Assembly (NCBI GenBank): GCA_000708835.1
Contig: DF237536.1
Location: 1-54,335, forward strand
Reading direction: 5' to 3'
DNA: 54,335 bases
From: Klebsormidium nitens
Lineage: Eukaryota > Plantae > Klebsormidiophyceae
Shown here: positions 42,453-52,341 of the stretch, piece after piece
Layout: every line of letters starts with the position of its first letter
Numbering within the stretch: the first letter of the stretch is position 1
Program-made: the position numbers and the translations under genes
The notes under the pieces: model-generated
Databases searched by the model: none
Seen by the model: only the letters and a program-made list of their open reading frames with translations
What the model was told of the DNA's origin: nothing

Positions 42453-44172
42453 GAATTGTAGAGGCAAGGAAAGGACAAAACACAGGAAGCGAAGACTGTT
42501 TACCCCACCTCCTTTGTCTGAAAAGTCCAGTCCCACAAGCGCGCTTGCCTGCGCTCGTGTGCGCGCGCTCGCGCGCGCGCAGTCGTGGTGCGGCAGCCCA
42601 GCCCCTCATTGGCACCGGGGTGGTTATCCAAAACTTTCCTGGACCGGTGTTATACTTTCCGGCGATCCGTCTCTTGCTGACCGTCTGACCCGCCGAAATC
42701 CACTCTGCAAAGTCAACAGACGATGCCATCAGATAGGATCCACTTCAAGACGGGGCACGAACGCTCTCAATAATTTCTCCCTTGGACGTCTTGTCTTCTC
42801 GAGGACGCTGCTCGCTTTGAGATCGTCGTCAGGTTAAGCTGGCAAACGCCTCGTCGAGACTCGAGTCGAATGCTTTGCAGAACTCTGGCAATTTTTCAAG
42901 CCCATGGGAAATTTGACGGACCCGGTTCACCAAATTGATTGCGATACACGTGGTCTCACGGACTGAATAGGGCAGGCCTGTCAGGATGCAACGTAGCGAA
43001 CATGAAACGAGGCATAGAAGCGAGTAAGCATAGGGCCGCTCGACACCCCAGCCCTTACCGTGCGGCTGGTAGCATGATTTGGCAAAGAGGTTTCCGGCAA
43101 TCGGGAAGCGAGAAAGAATCGAGCGGGCTCAGTCAGCCGTTCAGTCGTCAGCTACCCCTCAGTCGGAGTTGCTATTAAGATTCGAATATCTAGACAAAGA
43201 GTTTTGTGCCCCAACCTCGACATAACAAATGGCAGTCATTACTCACGGGTCTACAGCTAGTTGAAATGCCGATTGACGAGGATATAGTAGGTAAAAGGCT
43301 GTCTCACTTCCAGTTCCTTATCACCATAGACCGTCGGCTTTTGGGCGCGGCCGCGGCCGCGGCCGCCCAGCGCGTCACTGGCACCAAGGGCGCTGGTCTC
43401 ACCCTTCTCCCCGACCAGTCTTATCCGTCCCGGCCCGTCTCTTGCGAAATGCTTCTTCTCTGCACGGAATGCTTCTCACGCTGCATAGAAGGAATGGATC
43501 ACGTTTGTCGCCCATCTCACGAGGTGGAAGTAATTCTCAAGAAGGTCAGTCGTCTGACTTCTCTTTGTAATCGAAAGACGACGATTGGAATCGGTTCATC
43601 GGACAGCCGTCCAACCGGGTCAGATAATGCGTCGAATTTCTGAACGTTTAGACTCTGTGGCCAGTATCTACAGACGTCAGAAGAATTATCGTTTAAAAGA
43701 GGTGCGCTTCCTGATCTGCATGAAAAACCAGATTAGAAGAGCCAACGACTTCTTCAAAGCCATCGAACAGAAAATCCCTGCAGGTACTTTGAATGTGTAC
43801 GCCACTGTAGAGGACACGACTGTTCAACCCCCTCACGAGGGTTGGGAGCAGAGTACTTCTCGGTTGCTCTCGCATTAACTCCGTTGACCGATAAAAGGTT
43901 TTGGGGCGGGGGTTCTGCCCTGCCGAAACCGCTGTGCCTGAGATCTTCTAAAATACAACGGACGGACCGACAGCTAAGCGGAACCTCACCTTCCTGCCGT
44001 CCAGAGTCCAAGCGGTCAACCCTTGGAGAACTCTATGCTCGACCGGTCCGCTACCGTTTCCGGCCAGCGCTTGTACCAGCGGATTCCGTTTCTCCCGTTC
44101 CCTGAGGAGGTCGTCCGCGCCCAGAGCCTGTATCGTTCTCTAGATTCGGTATAGTAAGCTCAAGTTGTAGTA

Positions 44173-44245
44173 ACTGGGACGGGTAGGGTTAGTCTGTAGT
44201 TAGGGTGGGTACGGGTGCGGAGCGGGTGATTATATGGGTCTGGGT
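44173..44245 (+). repeat. G-rich (GGGT)n-containing repeat, copy 1
   Basis: ACTGGGACGGGTAGGGTTA...GGGTGGGTACGGGTGCGGAGCGGGT aligns by eye to 49952-50027. Confidence 0.7.
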
Positions 44246-45989
44246 GTTTTATTTTAGCTTCCGTTTTACTATAACGTGAGCTTACTCCTGAGTATTCTAG
44301 AGAAGTTTGGAGTCTGTCCCCAGTTGTGCACCCGCACTGAGACACAAGGAGGGCAACCGGTCATGGCCTGTTCAAAGTCTTTGACGACAGCAGGATCTGT
44401 GAAGGCACTGAAATTCGACGCACTGTCAAAAAATGAAAGCAACATCCTTTCACTGTCGCTTCTTTTACTTGAGCGACACTCATTTCGACACTCATGTCTA
44501 GAATCATTTCCTGTCCACTATTGGACCTGCTCACAGATACCTGCCGGGAGCTTTTGGCGACGACTTTCCACTTTTTCTTGTCCAGTCTCCAATGAGATTA
44601 TCGACAGCAGGCAGCCGCCGGGAAGTGAATGCTCAAATTCAGAGTAATACAAGATCCACGGACTCCGCATTCAAGGTACCGGAAAAGAGTAATCGACACA
44701 CCAGCTCGATTCATTAGAGACAAAAGCGGACAGCGCAAACAGCGACGGAGGAACTTTGGCCCACCTCTCGTTCCGTAAGGAGACTCCCCGCGCATGTTCG
44801 CGCATGCGCCCGGCCCGTTATCGGCACCGAGGGAGCAGATCCGTCACCTCCCCAGGACCAGTTTTATCCGTCCAGCTCGCCTCTTGTGAACGTCTGCCCG
44901 CCGGAATCCACGCTGCAACGTGAGATAGGAGAGGGATTGGATTGCTTTCAAAAGAAGAAGGGGCAAGAAGGCTTTCTGAAGAGCTCCTCCCGTAGACATA
45001 CCCCTCGTCCGACCCCTCTTGTGAACCGGTCTTATCCTTCCCAGCCCGTCTCTTCCTGAGCGTCTGTTTCGCCATGATTCATGCTGGAGGGCAACACAGA
45101 CGAGGCCAAGACACTCGGATCTATTGATTTCGATGATTCTGATTTCTCTTTCCAGCTGGAAAGTGTTTCTCCTCGCAGACGCTGCGCGCAGCTGGACCTC
45201 AGGACTGGAGTGGAGACTTGAGGAATTGCAAATCCCACTTTCTCGTGTGCTGAACCAAGTTTAGTCGCAAGCCTTTCTAGTCGGCGCCGGAAAGAAACTG
45301 AGTTGGTTTTGAGGATGCTGGGCCATGACTGACCCCTCACCCCAGGATTCAAGCATTGTGTTGGCGATTATTGGACAACATTGAAAGAGCACCTGAAGTG
45401 TCGCTTGGAAATCGCCCTGGAGTAACGTGACAGGGCCAGGTTTCCAAGAAGATGGTGTGTTGCTGCAAGGAGTGCTTGAAAACCTTCCACAAAACACAAC
45501 TTATATTGCAAATATATGTAGCGAAACCCAACAATGTAGCAGTGAACAGACAACACGTGGTTAGACTATACGGCCCCTGCCCTCAATAGCCTGTCATTAA
45601 GCAATGCAGCTTCTTTTTGTAAGCTCTTACAGACAATTAGTGAACAATCAACAGTTGTACATATAGTGGAATTAAAGATAACACCCTTCTGCCATGCATT
45701 GATCAAGAGAATGCAGTTACAGTGGCACCGTGCAGGCACTGAGTAACTAACTGGGTAGGAGAAGGGTTCTCAAGAAGGTTTTGTGAGCTAGCAGGAAGCA
45801 AAAGACAGATTCAAGCTTAAGTCAATTCAGCATAGCCTGCCATTGGAGAAACATGACGCAGCATTGCTGGCAGCTCCTGCCTGTCATGATCTAATGTTGC
45901 TCAAACGATGAGATGCATGTCAATTGAAAACCCTAATTCATTTCGACAGAATCGTCTGAATCTTTTTGAGCAGAGACTCCTTTCTGCAG

Positions 45990-48900
45990 GCTTCCCCAGT
46001 CAGCATAGGCTGGACGCTAATGCCAGGCGAGCTCAAGACTATCAGCAGCGGGGACGAGAAGACGGTTGTTGGCACCGATGCGACGGACAATGTGTGGCTG
46101 TTCAACGGTGCGACATGGGACCAGGCCCCCGGGAAAATGACCCAGGTATCAGTCGGGCTGAGCGGCATGTGGGCGGTTGACAAGGCGAACAAGCTGTACT
46201 ATTGGTAAGTACTAGGTTACGGACCTGGTTTGAGGCGGATTAAGTCAGTTGAGTTGCCATAACCCGGGTTCCACAGGCAACTGGCTATCTGTCAGTCGGG
46301 ATGAGCAGCATGTGGGCGGTTGACAAGGCGAACAAGCTGTACCATTGGTAAGTACTTGGTTACGGGCCTGGTTTGATGCAAACTAAGCCAGTTATACGTT
46401 AGTAAGTCCAAGCGTGGATCCTCAGGCAACATTGACCAATTGCAGTCAGGATGCATTTTGCCTTCAAGTATCTCCCTAGGAGGCCTATGGGGACAAGTCC
46501 TCCTACTAGCGAAGCACAGGAAAGGTTTCGGTGCTGACTAGACCCAGTTACGAGTGTACCTGACCAGCTTTCAACCAGGATTCGTCTGAACGTTGTAGAA
46601 AGATAACTAACGAATTCTAACCCGTTCTGCTTAACGGCGGGTTCTCCCTGCGATGCGCGCAGGGACGATGGCCAACAGAACTTCGTGGAGCTGAAGACTG
46701 GCGTAGCTGTTACCCAGGTGGCGTCCGGGCAAGACGTTTACATTTTGGATACCCAGCGCAACATTTTCAAATACCAAGGCGATGGTAAGTTACTATCTCG
46801 ACATGCGAAATGGGCATACACACCCACACAGGAAGCTGCTTTCGTTCCTAACCAGGTCTGGTTTAAAGGTCTCGAACCAGCTTTTGTCGGGTAGAAGGGC
46901 ATCTAACCTAAGGCCTAAGAAGGTTCATGTAACAGTCGTTTTCTTCGATCTGCGCGGCTTCTTCGATGGTATCCTGTAGCAACCCACCTCTGGGCCAGAA
47001 CGGACCCACTCTTTTGCGACTCTTTTCCGCCCCGTTGTAGCAGCTCATTCTCCTTGCCCTCATTCAGAAATGGTTTTTAGCGTTAATGCCAACTGAGACC
47101 AAAGCCCTTCAAAGACCACAGTCACCAGCAGATTCCCGTCCCCCTTTCCATTGTGACAGAGTGCCACCCTCCTCGCCGATTGATCTCGAAATCCCTCCTC
47201 TTTCGCTCTGTCTTCAGTTTCCAACCAAAAATCAGCGGAGCGTAATTAGAGACTGTTTTAGATGCTCTTCGTCCAGCCTGATCTCTTACTTGCTGGTCAC
47301 AGAAGCATCAACCAGGTCCACGTTAAAGCGAAACCCTCCTGTGCGCGTGTGCATGATTCAGAGAAGTGGATCCAGTTGGACGGCAAGCTTGATTCAATCG
47401 ACACGAGCGATTACGGGGACCTGTGGGGGATTCAGGTCGGGGAGTTGAAAAGGGCGCACCGCCGCATTAACGGGGGCTGGGTCTATGTCCTGGGGCCAGA
47501 CAACCGGGACACTCTCAAGCAGGTTTGCATGCCCGGTTCAGCCCTCGGGTCAAGCTTGAAACAACATAGGTCGCCTGAAACGATGTCACAGGAAGGTTTC
47601 GGTGCTAGTAGGTCTGGTTAAGAGGTTTTTCAACGAGCTCTCAACCATCGTTGTCTGGCAGAAGAGGATCTGGTCGGGACCTATTCAGGTCCAATAACGA
47701 TGGCTTTTCTTTGTGAGTGTATGGGCTTGAAAGGACGACTTAGCTTTCAAGTGCCTTTCGAGGGGCCGGTGCATGTACTTTGAGTGCTGACCTTCTCAAA
47801 TTCTGCTGATCTCGATGGAATTTGATGAGACATGGTGAAACTTGTGAAGTGGCATACGACGTGTCACTCGGTTTGACAGAATGCCCTCTCCTGAGAATGT
47901 AGTACGACATGAAGTATGTAGGTGAATCGAAGCGGAAGTGAGGGAATCGACAAAGGGCGAGAAGGGACAGACGAAGAGAAAGGTTATGATACAGACTCTT
48001 AGTATATTCAAGGATGGACGAGGTGAGAAACGAAACATTGAATCTGCCACATATTTAATCGAAGGGAACTCCTGGTTTCACGATGGGAGAAGGGGCACGA
48101 TCCCGAGGCGGCAAAGTACAATAAAAGAAGAACAACTCGAAGCTTCAAAAAGTAAAAAGCGCGAACGAAGAGGACGGTTGTTCCAAGCAGGTGTCCACCG
48201 GCATCAGCGGCGTGTGGGCAGTCGACAGCAATGGCACGGTGTACCGTTGGGTGAACAGCACGAGACACGAGGGCGCGTGGGTCAAGGCAGAGGGATCCCT
48301 CAAGTCCATCAGCGCAGGCTACCCCCTCGTGTGGGGGCTCGACACAAACGGCAAAGTCTACAAGTACAGGTAAACGTTTGTCTGCAGTTACGCGCGCAAG
48401 ACATTTGAAAAGTGCTCTACCCACACCTTTCTTGCGCATCCCCTTTCACGAGGCTGTCTCTTGAGATGGGGAGTTTCAGACTTGCTATCTGAAGCTTTGT
48501 TGCATGACGCGAAGAACAGCCTTGTTCTCATTATTGAATCCAGAAATTGGGCATGTATAGTCGAACACCTAACCCAGCGAGTGGGTTGTTGACGGGAAGA
48601 GACACACTGGCAGGCGCAGGGAAGTAAGATACCATTTGATGATGTTAATTCGGCTGACCTAGAAAGAGGCGCCGTAACGGAACCGGGGCGACGACAGAAG
48701 GATCAGACGTCCTCTTCTCGTGTCTGTACCAGAAAGAACTGTTTCGCTGCGGACATTCGGAGCCACGTCCACATACGGATAGTTTGATTAACCTTGCAGC
48801 CAATGTGCCCTCATCAATCCCTTGTGTTGCCCAACCTGAGAAGAGTGCACCGGGCTTTGATGAGAATGATGTAAGACTAACAAGTGTTTACTTTTCCGGG

Positions 48901-51477
48901 TGCTTTTTCCTTGTGATGGCAGTGTGCAGTCAGAATGGCACCAACTTTGGTCATGGGCTTTGAACGTCACGGTCTGTCTATCGATCTGCCTTCGCAGTTT
49001 CTGAAGTGTAGAGAGCGAGGAGGAATCTGTTATTAGAGGACGGTTCTGCTGCTAATCAAAGCTGGTTACGGGGCATCTAACAGCTCTCAACCAATGATCC
49101 TCGTCTGGTAAATGGCAGATACACCGAAGCCTAACCAGGTTTAGCTAAACGCTAGTTCTTCCTTGTGACATTCAGTTCGGACGGCACTGACTCTGGTGGC
49201 CCTCAAAAGACTTCAACGGCCGTCGTCCCTGTTGCACAAAAGCTGCGGTAAGCCACAGGAAAGGATTCGCTCATAACCCAACCTGGTCAAGGCGTATTCA
49301 ACAGATGGTAACCAGCTTCTGGTCAACATCCGGTAGAGGGGGGTATAACCGTCGGAAGCCTAACCATGCTTTGTTATTGATACTTTCTCCCGACGAGCAC
49401 ACTCCGTGATCTGACAGCGTCACGTGTCGCTTTTAGATCCGCGGCTGAGCCCGTTAAGATCGATTTCGAATCAGCTGTTACTTTTTCAAGTCAGTATTAA
49501 TTGTCGGAGGCGATCACACTGTTTCCTGTTATTAAAAAGCTGCGCCCGTTATGTTTGGTTGCGCGCGCATCGGCAATTACTCTTTTAAAATCACTCTTGA
49601 TTGTTGGAGGCGACCAGACTGATCCCTGTTACCACAAAGATGCGGCGGCCCGTCACCGTATCGGCTGGAAAAATTGCTCAGGCTTCATTCATGGACGCCG
49701 GAGGGATCAACCCGTTTCCTTGTTTCACAAACTCACAACAACTTCGCAATGCGCGCTCGCGGATGTCTCGGAACAAGGACGGGAGCTGGACAACTGCGAA
49801 GCAATCTGCAGTCGATGCTGTTAAACTTTTAAACGGCCCACCTTCGTAACTGCGGACGAAGTGAGACATCTTTTCCGGGCATTTGCAGCATTGAACTCAA
49901 GAAAGATAATAGTAGTACTTAAAGCGAGATAATCAATGATAAGGTAATCGCACTGGGACGGGGTAGGGTTACGTTGGTGGTAATTCGGGTGGGTATGGGC
50001 GCGGAGCAGGTATCTTTTTGGGTTGGGATTACCCACTGAAACACCAAACTTATCTTCTTATTATCTTGGCATAATGGTATCTTTGTTGCGGATTTTTTTT
50101 GCAGCGTGGTCGGGGAGTATGTACCGACGCCCGGCCCCCGGCACAGCGCCTACCCGGCGCACCTCGACCCGACCAACGACGCGACTAAACTCGGCGACTA
50201 TCTTGCCTATTCCAACGAGCTCTGCACTCTGGAGGACGTTTTCCCCGATCCGGGCCCGGGGAAGCGCGAGCGCATCGGGCTGTCCACCGGGGTTTGCACG
50301 GTGATCCAGGAACCGAGCGCGGGCGACCCTGCCACGGTGTTCCAGTGCCAAACGTCGCTGCAATTTCAGTCGGGGAAGTACGCCGGGAGCAGCATCTTCC
50401 TCGCCAGTGAGCCCTCTGGAAGGCCGTCACTTGACTAGCTTTCTTCGGAGTGCTTAAAGAGGGCGTCGGGAGGTCGCCCCTCGGCGACCCGAAAAGTGCC
50501 CATAGAGCCAAACTGGTCGCTCGGGGCAATCTGGAGATGGGATCTGGTCCGTCGGATGAAATTCCTCTTCAGATGCACGAGTCTCGCACGAGTGTTCCTT
50601 GAAATCTGTTGCCCTCTTCAAGTATACTTTCTTGAAAGCTTTGCTCCAGTTTACCCACTCATTAAGTACGAACACAGAAGAAAACCCACCACAAGCCATT
50701 TTCCCACCACAAGCCAGACCTGTTTACTGATTGGTCCAGCGCGTTCATACCAGGTCAGAACTGTCGAAGACGGGTTCAAGCCTACTCAGTTCGATCGCGT
50801 CCCTAGAAAGTCAAACTTTCAGCTGTCTGATTAATATCCGATTTAGGTGCGCCTATTCAAAGGTGATAGGCTTTCTCTCCACAAAGTGGCCGTTCAATAA
50901 ACCGCTAGCGTATGCCAGGAGACGCGAACTTTGATTCATCGGATGTGAAATCAAGAACCTCAGGTTTTAAACTCGTGTCTCGGCCATCACCGCATGCACC
51001 TTTCACTCTGGTGGCAATTCTTGTTCGATCCTTCGTGTTCTCGACACTGGTTGGTTACTCGCAAGCATCCCAGTGCATCTGGTAAATGTAGTGCAATCCT
51101 TACGTTTTTCGAAAGCGGTATGCGATGGTGTCCCCTTTTTCGCTTGTGAAACTCAACCATGATGTTCAGGCGAGTTGACAGCTCCCCTTCTCCCGCTTAG
51201 ACACTTTGCTCAGTCGCGCCCGTTTCATCCGTCCCCCTCTGCAGTTGTTTACAGCGACGGCAACGTGCCTGCATACGCTATCCTCGGAGGGACCGGCTAT
51301 TTCAAGAACGTCCAGGGGCAGGCCACCCAGGTGGACGAGACCCCCTTCGCTGCCCAGTCCCCGCACGGAGAGTACTACATCGATCTCGAGTACTATCTAC
51401 CGGGTGGTTCCAAGGCCGGTGCACCTGCGCCAATCACTTCAGACGATTTCAAAGTAGCACTACGCACGTCTGGATAG
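45990..51477 (+). CDS. Tectonin six-blade beta-propeller lectin fused to an allene oxide cyclase (AOC)/dirigent-like beta-barrel (at least 427 aa; start exon not found)
   Basis: Exons 45990-46204, 46663-46784, 47362-47522, 48191-48369, 49176-49247, 50105-50406, 51245-51477. All introns are GT-AG, phases are 2,1,0,2,2,1 and all match, and the sum of 1284 nt gives an open frame. Six tectonin-type blades (W..xxG.L..ISxG...VW(A/G)VD..G.VY.W/Y) are followed by the linker SSDGTDSGGPQKTST. Then come VAQKLRVVGEY...RHS...KLGDYLAYSNEL...RIGLSTGVCTVI...FQCQTSLQF...YAILGGTGYFKNVQGQA, paralleling AOC QELSVYEI...RHS...LGDLVPFTNKL...RVGITAGLCVVI...FEATYSFYF...LAITGGAGIFEGAYGQV. Confidence 0.82.
46149..46430 (+). 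repeat. Local tandem duplication (~143 bp period) of the 3' end of a tectonin exon with its 5' splice site
   Basis: TCAGTCGGG..AGC.GCATGTGGGCGGTTGACAAGGCGAACAAGCTGTAC.ATTG|GTAAGTACT.GGTTACGG.CCTGGTTTGA occurs at 46149 and 46292. Confidence 0.9.
49500..49631 (+). repeat. Two imperfect 32-bp direct repeats at a 100-bp period (intronic)
   Basis: ATTGTCGGAGGCGATCACACTGTTTCCTGTTA versus ATTGTTGGAGGCGACCAGACTGATCCCTGTTA. Confidence 0.75.
49952..50027 (+). repeat. G-rich (GGGT)n-containing repeat, copy 2 (intronic)
   Basis: Homologous by eye to 44173-44245. Confidence 0.7.
50458..50535. mobile_element. Fragment of the 41711-41870 MITE family in an intron of the tectonin-AOC gene
   Basis: TAA-AGAGGGCGTC end followed by TCGGCGACC, TGGTCGCT and AATCTGGA in the same order as the reverse complement of 41790-41870. 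Confidence 0.55.
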
Positions 51478-51962
51478 GCACAGGGAGAAATTAGAACCAT
51501 GACCAGACCTGGTTGCATGGGCTTTGTTTACATGCCCTTCTACCAGACGAAGCTGATTAGGAAACCCTTAACCAAGATTGTAACTGCGGTAAGTAGCCAG
51601 AGAACCTTCCCACACCAGGTTCGTCATATAAGTGGTCGCATCCCGCACTACCGAAAAGCGATGTAAGTTATTTAACCACGTACTAACCAGGGTTAAATTA
51701 GATGCAAAACTCACCATTTGTGAGCAACTTGTACCTAGCTAGAAATCGTCGTCAAGAGTGGAGTAAATCATTGAGATTAGTTAATTGACCTGTCCGGTGG
51801 TTTATTGCCGATTTCCGCTTAACTCTAATTCGTTAACAAAAGATTGTGTAAGTACGCTTTGGTCTAGACCCAGACTAATCCAATCTAGAAATGCCCCGAA
51901 AACATGCAGTGGATCTTCAGCACGTAAATGTCCGAGAGGCGTATGATGGACCATCATATCGC

Positions 51963-52341
51963 AATTTTAGCTCCTCATTGCGGCAACGTTGCGCCACGTT
52001 TCGAGGCGTTGCTGCAACACTAGGCGTTGGCAAGTGTAAGGAATCAACGCCTAAAACGTTGCGAGAACTGGTTAAAGCTAAACCAAACTTAAACCCTCGT
52101 TGCTGCAACAGAGATGCAACGTCTCGCAACAATCTTACAACGTTGCATGACCGTTNNNNNNNNNNNNNNNNNNNNAAGGTTTAGCTTCGGTTTAGCTTTA
52201 ACCAGTTCTCGCAACGTTTTAGGCGTTGATTCTTTACACTTGCCAACGCCTAGTAGTGTTGCAGCAACGCCTCAAAACGTTGCGCAACATGATTGCGCGC
52301 GGCAACGCCGTGCAACGTTGCTGCAACGAGCGGCTAAAATT
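51963..52341. mobile_element. Foldback/MITE-like element with long (>130 bp) inverted arms spanning an assembly gap
   Basis: ~51963-52100 is the reverse complement of ~52177-52341 with several substitutions and one small indel. The arms contain many CAACGTTGC-type motifs. Confidence 0.75.
52156..52175. other. Assembly gap (20 N)
   Basis: Run of N in the sequence; the true length is unknown. Confidence 1.

Follow-up and report, generated by a model that had tools for sequence, protein, structure and literature searches.

A Seven-Exon Gene for a Predicted Lectin-Barrel Protein

The 54,335-nucleotide (nt) stretch analyzed here (the window) is the entire scaffold DF237536.1 of the charophyte alga Klebsormidium nitens NIES-2285 (assembly GCA_000708835.1) and carries the gene KFL_005870070 at 46020-51477. 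Its product is public as a 417-amino-acid (aa) "hypothetical protein" (P0001). The gene joins a tectonin-type lectin propeller to a barrel of the allene oxide cyclase (AOC)/dirigent type, and it is a real new lectin-barrel chimera. The full protein is not yet clearly made, because the RNA seen lacks the only exon that carries a start codon.

The open reading frame (ORF) of 417 codons is intact across seven exons, A-G, all on the forward strand. Searched exon by exon with tblastn, all seven matched P0001 at 100%, so the exon coordinates and phases proposed in an earlier note on this DNA agree exactly with the public protein. Exon A (45990-46204) encodes tectonin blades 1-2 and contains the annotated start codon at 46020-46022. 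All three Met codons of the ORF lie in this exon, and exons B-G have none. Blade 3 is encoded by exon B (46663-46784), which also matches P0001, and a degenerate blade 4 by exon C (47362-47522), with a weak Pfam Tectonin match. Exon D (48191-48369) supplies blades 5-6 and matches both Pfam Tectonin (4.9e-10) and Hyd_WA. The 72-nt exon E (49176-49247, phase 2-2) encodes a Ser/Gly/Thr linker and the start of barrel strand 1. The first half of the barrel follows in exon F (50105-50406), with an RHS(A) motif, a GD pair, an invariant Asn, and two invariant Cys. Exon G (51245-51477) holds the second half with its GGTGxF motif, the C-terminal tail, and the stop codon, which is the annotated end of the coding sequence. 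The same note had read exon E as linker plus first barrel strand, and the structural model agrees, with predicted strand 236-243 (AQKLRVVG) straddling the E/F junction. A short run of N, an assembly gap, lies at ~52150-52180, ~700 nt 3' of the gene, and appears as X in ORF translations.

Propeller and Barrel Exons Are Spliced into One mRNA

RNA evidence was taken from Logan contigs of four runs from four studies, placed on 45500-51499. GT..AG joints were found in all four runs for 46784>47362, 47522>48191, 48369>49176, 49247>50105, and 50406>51245. In run X1, joint depths were even, at 138 for B-C, 243 for C-D, 212 for D-E, 255 for E-F, and 199 for F-G. Depth over the introns in this run was 11-13 in each of the three 3' introns, 31 in C-D, and 82 in the partly retained B-C intron. 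A single contig of run X19 runs through exons D, E, and F. Given this contig and the joints in four runs, the fusion is therefore a single spliced mRNA, and exons B-G are joined in one real, abundant, correctly spliced message. The claim that propeller and barrel share one transcript thus stands, five of its six introns being backed by RNA joints. In the RNA contigs of the four runs, no support was found for exon A or for its junction with exon B.

Gene prediction could in principle have wrongly fused a tectonin gene whose end is at 48369 with a distinct barrel gene that starts before 49176 or 50105. A tectonin paralog, KFL_003060060, does end exactly at the fusion point, and the barrel gene of a related alga does stand alone. 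Against such a merger, the D-E and E-F joints are as deep as all other joints in the four runs, and the D-E intron (depth 13 against 212 for its joint in X1) reaches only about 5% of exon depth. Neither a contig break nor a new start was seen between D and F, where the one contig spans all three exons, and tblastn found no remnant of a signal-peptide exon in the D-E intron. Two separate genes are contradicted by the RNA joints, the depths, and the D-E-F contig; we reject this explanation as wholly improbable.

The B-C intron (46785-47361) was retained in roughly 37-60% of the RNA, versus about 5% for the downstream introns. An ATG in frame with exon C lies inside this intron at 47262, and the retained form has upstream ORFs.

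The N-Terminal Domain Resembles Six-Bladed Tectonins

On the whole of P0001, Pfam Tectonin (PF19193) scored 108.4 bits against a cut-off of 30 (E 4.4e-31). Exons A (6.5e-13) and D each pass the threshold alone. In sequence searches, residues 1-220 matched Laccaria bicolor Tectonin 2 (Tec2, 5fsb) at 1.9e-15 and carp fish-egg lectin (fishelectin, 4ruq) at 1.1e-6. The AlphaFold2 (AF2) model superposed on the six-bladed 5fsb with a TMt of 0.83 and a root-mean-square deviation (rmsd) of 2.2 Å over 230 columns (Foldseek). On 4ruq the TMt was 0.79, and the rmsd ranged from 2.2 to 2.6 Å over both structures. The predicted local distance difference test (pLDDT) score was 72-96 for blades 1-3 and 57-76 for blades 4-6. 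In this model of the annotated protein the six blades close into one propeller. The six tectonin-type blades that had been read from the DNA are thus present in the encoded protein.

Known tectonins bind microbial or O-methylated glycans, and 5fsb is itself a Tec2 complex with O-methylated sugars. Tec2 (5fsb/5fsc) and fishelectin (4ruq/4rus) are six-bladed propellers of about 220 aa, as is the domain encoded here. They differ from it in being stand-alone lectins, whereas the K. nitens propeller has a barrel domain after it; moreover, blades 1-2 are missing from the K. nitens RNA seen.

The C-Terminal Domain Shares a Fold with AOC and Dirigent Proteins

Pfam left the barrel below threshold. P0001 scored 18.7 bits for Dirigent (PF03018, cut-off 29.1) and 18.3 bits for Allene_ox_cyc (PF06351, cut-off 31.2), for which the relative P0003 reached 24.8. 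Single exons E, F, and G gave no Pfam match, the pieces being too short; the domain came to light only with the public full-length protein and a family profile. Two relatives, P0004 (31.1) and P0009 (53.1), exceeded the Dirigent cut-off. A seven-sequence family profile (A1) matched AOC (3.6e-6), dirigent (1.2e-5), and PodA (0.008) in the PDB. P0001 keeps 14 of the 14 invariant residues of the barrel family in this alignment, including both invariant Cys.

Structure comparison gave the same picture. The top Foldseek matches of the barrel model were AOC (4h69/4h6a) and the pterocarpan-synthase dirigents. In VIA-align, the barrel matched PpAOC2 (4h6a) with Z 11.8 and an rmsd of 2.7 Å over 129 aligned residues, tied with the dirigent 6ooc. 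The AOCs as a whole gave Z 11.1-11.8 and rmsd 2.7-3.2 Å. Among dirigents, Z was 12.5 for 6ooc, 12.4 for 8th2, and 11.1 for 5lal, with pterocarpan synthases at 12.0-12.5. Sequence identity in these alignments was 17-20% to AOCs versus 8-13% to dirigents. A model in the Atlas had a TM score of 0.66 to a Dirigent cluster over residues 229-396. The linker ahead of strand 236-243 is low in pLDDT and is predicted to be flexible, with a length of about 20-40 residues.

Taken at the level of fold, the proposed AOC/dirigent-like barrel is borne out, by the profile matches to the PDB (E about 4e-6) and by Z scores of 11.8-12.5. On these models, the C-terminal domain belongs to the eight-stranded AOC/dirigent barrel superfamily, and we do not file it as an AOC or as a canonical dirigent. 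Identity with either class did not hold up as well as the fold, since both Pfam thresholds were missed and the catalytic Glu of AOC aligned, in a low-confidence segment, to Val. In the profile alignment to AtAOC2 (2brj), R29-H30-S31, G46-D47, an aromatic residue at F51, N53, C71, and the GGxGxF turn are kept. The same alignment sets catalytic Glu23 against Val, Asn25 against Thr, Tyr105 against Ile, and Pro32 against Ala; a Glu occurs two residues before the Glu23 position on the same strand, in a segment where the alignment is of low confidence.

AOCs (AtAOC2 2brj/2gin, PpAOC1/2 4h6a-c) thus have in common with the K. nitens barrel the eight-stranded fold and the RHS, GD, N53, and C71 motifs. 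They are plastidial, in contrast to the relatives of the K. nitens barrel, which are secreted and carry a likely disulfide. Dirigents (AtDIR6 5lal, PsDRR206 4rev, pterocarpan synthases 6ooc/6ood/8th2) share the barrel fold, and the stand-alone barrel relatives have signal peptides as dirigents do, whereas P0001 has none. By eye, signal peptides are present in P0003, in P0004/P0015, and in the K. nitens paralog KFL_000200110 (P0007), which UniProt names "Dirigent protein". Together with KFL_000200110 and a few relatives from uncultured algae, the C-terminal domain of P0001 makes up a small family with an RHSP motif, which in sequence appears nearer to AOC than to the dirigents.

A Candidate Exon Capture at an Old Stop Codon

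Both halves of the gene have stand-alone counterparts. The paralog KFL_003060060 (P0011) is a tectonin-only protein of 305 aa, 65% identical, encoded by the same four exons plus a first exon for a Ser/Ala-rich, transit-peptide-like leader. It ends in ...ACA GTG TAA AC where the window has ...AC AG/GTAAAC (the slash marks the splice site). The exon D donor, CAG/GTAAAC, overlaps the would-be stop, and the unspliced reading is KYR followed by a stop. Because the paralog's stop aligns with the donor in the window, the donor feeding exon E therefore sits on the old stop.

The closest relative of the barrel, P0003, is 67% identical and comes from uncultured algae. Its cDNA-like contig codes for the barrel together with a signal peptide and a Cys-rich stretch. 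On genomic contigs the gene has four exons, namely a signal-peptide exon, a short phase 2-2 exon homologous to exon E (L003:9184-9265, with the same phases), and equivalents of F and G at identical positions. Tectonin exons are absent from about 8 kb upstream of this barrel gene. A paralog ending at the fusion point and a stand-alone four-exon barrel gene in a relative thus point to exon capture, in which tectonin exons would have taken the place of a barrel gene's secretory first exon, the phases being matched.

On this comparison of genes, a duplicate of the tectonin propeller gene would have gained a 5' splice site at its old stop codon. The new donor would then be joined, in frame, to exons 2-4 of a gene whose barrel product was once secreted and carried a disulfide, donor and acceptor both being phase 2, and the signal-peptide exon of the barrel gene would have been lost. 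Searches of the window by tblastn and sensitive blastn turned up no equivalent of the signal-peptide exon present in the relative. Ratios of nonsynonymous to synonymous substitution (dN/dS) of 0.08-0.27 point to purifying selection on all exons.

At the end of intron 1 of KFL_003060060 (L002:10985-11771), an 82-nt unit is tandemly repeated 9.6 times. Every copy includes the 3' splice site together with the opening ~27 nt of exon 2, and the annotated acceptor is in the last copy only. The window carries a single copy of this unit at about 45962-46015. A polyphenol oxidase (PPO) gene (tyrosinase/PPO1, L002:1-2033) lies ~8 kb from the tectonin paralog in K. nitens; a review states, by contrast, that PPOs are absent from algae (PMC7010833).

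Transcripts Appear to Start Downstream of the Annotated Start Codon

Several observations weigh against a chimeric gene whose product is the annotated propeller-barrel protein. Contig depth over exon A and the A-B intron was 0 in three runs and about 2 in X1, from a single unspliced contig, compared with 100-250x for the other exons and 10-80x for the other introns. In every run, exon A and the A-B intron reach at most about 1% of the depth seen over the other exons. No joint entering 46663 was seen in the contigs of the four runs. Contigs covering exon B begin inside it, at about 46670-46722, and the X1 contig start at 46691 is preceded by read-2 adapter, as expected at a shared fragment and transcript 5' end. 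The expressed mRNA appears not to carry all six blades, with blades 1-2 at about 0-2x; this hole is one in the contig cover of four runs, and a hole in contig cover is not proof. The annotated N-terminus, MPGELKTISSG..., also has no hydrophobic leader by eye, although the relatives are secreted, and tblastn and sensitive blastn turned up nothing equivalent to the paralog's first exon in the 8 kb upstream. The AF2 models are of middling confidence (pLDDT 62-65, with 62 for the barrel domain model), and the fusion has been seen in one species only, K. nitens.

The dominant RNA appears to lack exon A, hence two of the six blades and every AUG of the fused ORF. Since exons B-G have no Met, the dominant RNA therefore has no canonical start for this ORF. 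Cover over the A-B intron is roughly a tenth of that over the other introns, which argues that the transcript starts downstream of exon A. Such a downstream start is, in our judgment, likely, and it appears to lie near 46670-46700.

Other causes of the hole were considered and rejected. The local 143-nt repeat is not the cause, as cover is missing from the 150 unique nt of exon A too, and neither is a length filter, as junction contigs of about 60 nt were kept elsewhere. Spliced-leader trans-splicing at the exon B acceptor was rejected because there is no shared loose end at 46663 and contig starts vary.

The repeat itself is a 143-nt tandem duplication, with its first copy at 46149-46291 and its second at 46292-46434 on the forward strand, the latter forming a pseudo-exon A'. 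Copied are the final 56 nt of exon A together with the donor and the beginning of the intron (90% identity over 102 nt), and an intact donor and in-frame ATGs are preserved in the second copy. A depth-2 contig of X1 has a single-copy form, which could reflect allelic variation, a fault in the reference assembly, or a collapse introduced by the contig assembler.

Upstream of the gene, an unannotated expressed block at 45500-45962 had RNA contig depths of 12-100. Its expression is comparable to that of the tectonin-barrel exons, it extends upstream of 45500, and it contains no convincing ORF. The contig ends differ by run (45845, 45867, 45906, and 45962), and annotated genes are absent between 42610 and 46019, the region in which it lies. 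This block is probably part of a separate transcript, perhaps one paired divergently with that starting near 46690. The region is also rich in repeats. Dispersed repeats of 50-70 nt, 73-76% identical, occur at 43364-43443, 44807-44873, and 45004-45054, and a further pair was seen by eye at about 44170-44260 and 49945-50040, the latter in the E-F intron. These may be fragments of mobile elements.

With transcripts that appear to start near exon B, the N-terminus, the subcellular location, and even the translation of the six-blade form are putative. Two readings remain: either a full-length isoform arises from an upstream start under unsampled conditions, or the chimera is young and its abundant RNA is truncated at the 5' end and poorly translatable. 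According to the latter, transcription would begin at a new internal site close to exon B, and the gene would have lost the exon or exons that once came first, together with the start codon. Correctly spliced RNA would then give no protein, or a truncated one of at most four blades plus the barrel, initiated at a non-AUG codon or at the intronic ATG 47262. The uncovered exon A and A-B intron and the Met-less exons B-G both fit this reading, as does the retention of the B-C intron in 37-60% of the RNA in a form that carries upstream ORFs. So do the repeat-rich sequence upstream of exon A without an exon 1 homolog, the tandem duplication at the exon A donor, and the loss of the barrel gene's signal peptide.

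The coding sequence itself speaks against such decay. The 417-codon ORF is intact through seven exons, dN/dS is low in every one of them, exon A included, and the invariant residues of the barrel family are all kept. Exon A is 73% identical in aa to exon 2 of the paralog with a dN/dS of 0.15, which counts against a long-dead exon, and its acceptor is intact in a context conserved with KFL_003060060. Expression is high and even, and the evidence from RNA consists of four runs only, as contigs. We consider a non-productive young chimera possible but doubtful.

The Architecture Occurs Once among the Proteins Searched

An exhaustive phmmer search of 1.84 billion representative proteins with exon F returned 10 matches, and a tectonin domain was present in P0001 only; the exon F matches included stand-alone barrel proteins. 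In the Atlas, no cluster combined the two domains. Word-indexed protein searches yielded just the paralog plus one relative, which leaves the spread of the architecture beyond their reach. In the literature, no paper was found with both "tectonin" and "dirigent", nor any naming KFL_005870070. The earlier note had called the architecture undescribed. This holds for the literature and for the barrel matches, among which P0001 is the sole tectonin carrier; the protein itself was already public as hypothetical KFL_005870070.

The nearest known parallel is found in the monocot chimeric jacalins such as rice OsJAC1, in which, as in the protein annotated here, a dirigent-type barrel and a carbohydrate-binding domain occur in one polypeptide. 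The dirigent domain of OsJAC1 (7r5z/7ywe) matches the K. nitens barrel in fold (VIA-align Z 10.6), at a sequence identity of 8%. In the monocot chimeras the lectin is a jacalin prism C-terminal to the dirigent domain, whereas in K. nitens it is a tectonin propeller at the N-terminus, so the different lectin fold and reversed order that had been proposed relative to the grass chimeras are confirmed. Pfam found no jacalin domain in P0001. The K. nitens fusion is an analogue of the monocot chimeric jacalins and not a member of that group, with an independent origin in a charophyte alga. A defence role has been demonstrated for grass dirigent-jacalin proteins.

Function and Significance

Taken together, we hold with moderate confidence that KFL_005870070 is a chimeric gene, derived from a tectonin duplicate spliced onto captured barrel exons, with a predicted propeller-linker-barrel product. 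The annotated product would consist of a six-bladed propeller like that of Tec2 and fishelectin, a flexible linker, and an eight-stranded barrel. By analogy with Tec2 and fishelectin, the propeller would dock on glycans. The barrel tethered to it would bind or direct a small reactive molecule of hydrophobic character, following the same logic as the grass dirigent-jacalin chimeras.

A stronger version was put forward before the RNA had been consulted. It holds that the complete six-blade lectin-barrel protein is made, perhaps from an induced upstream promoter, and that it would serve in defence by directing the cyclisation of oxylipins or the coupling of phenoxy radicals at glycans of microbes or of the wall. 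In its favor, both architecture and fusion transcript have been confirmed, all exons appear to be under purifying selection, known tectonins bind the appropriate microbial or O-methylated glycans, and rice JAC1 is a dirigent-lectin chimera whose dirigent domain is among the fold matches. On the other side, exon A is absent from the RNA of four studies, there is no signal peptide by which the protein could reach the wall or a microbial surface, and the low-confidence alignment to 2brj does not bear out conservation of the catalytic residues. We regard this complete reading, the defence role included, as rather unlikely.

[quoted passage not shown] The RHSP-motif family might be the unrecognised cyclase behind OPDA and dn-OPDA in Klebsormidium, with the fusion relocating the barrel inside the cell. 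Relocation is conceivable because the secretion signal has been removed and the tectonin paralog has a transit-peptide-like first exon. The secreted nature of the stand-alone family members argues against a plastid-type AOC role, and we regard the cyclase proposal as a long shot.

The weight of these findings is limited by the occurrence in a single species and by the unsettled start of the protein. Lectin-dirigent chimeras have so far been a grass speciality, with roles in pathogen defence. An independent charophyte fusion with another lectin fold would mean that evolution has linked a stereo-directing barrel to a glycan-reading domain on more than one occasion. The locus would also be a clean case of gene birth by exon capture, in which a stop codon was turned into a splice donor and the phases were compatible. 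Finally, a tiny barrel family that lies between AOC and the dirigents, in an alga that makes OPDA without a recognised AOC, offers a concrete cyclase candidate.

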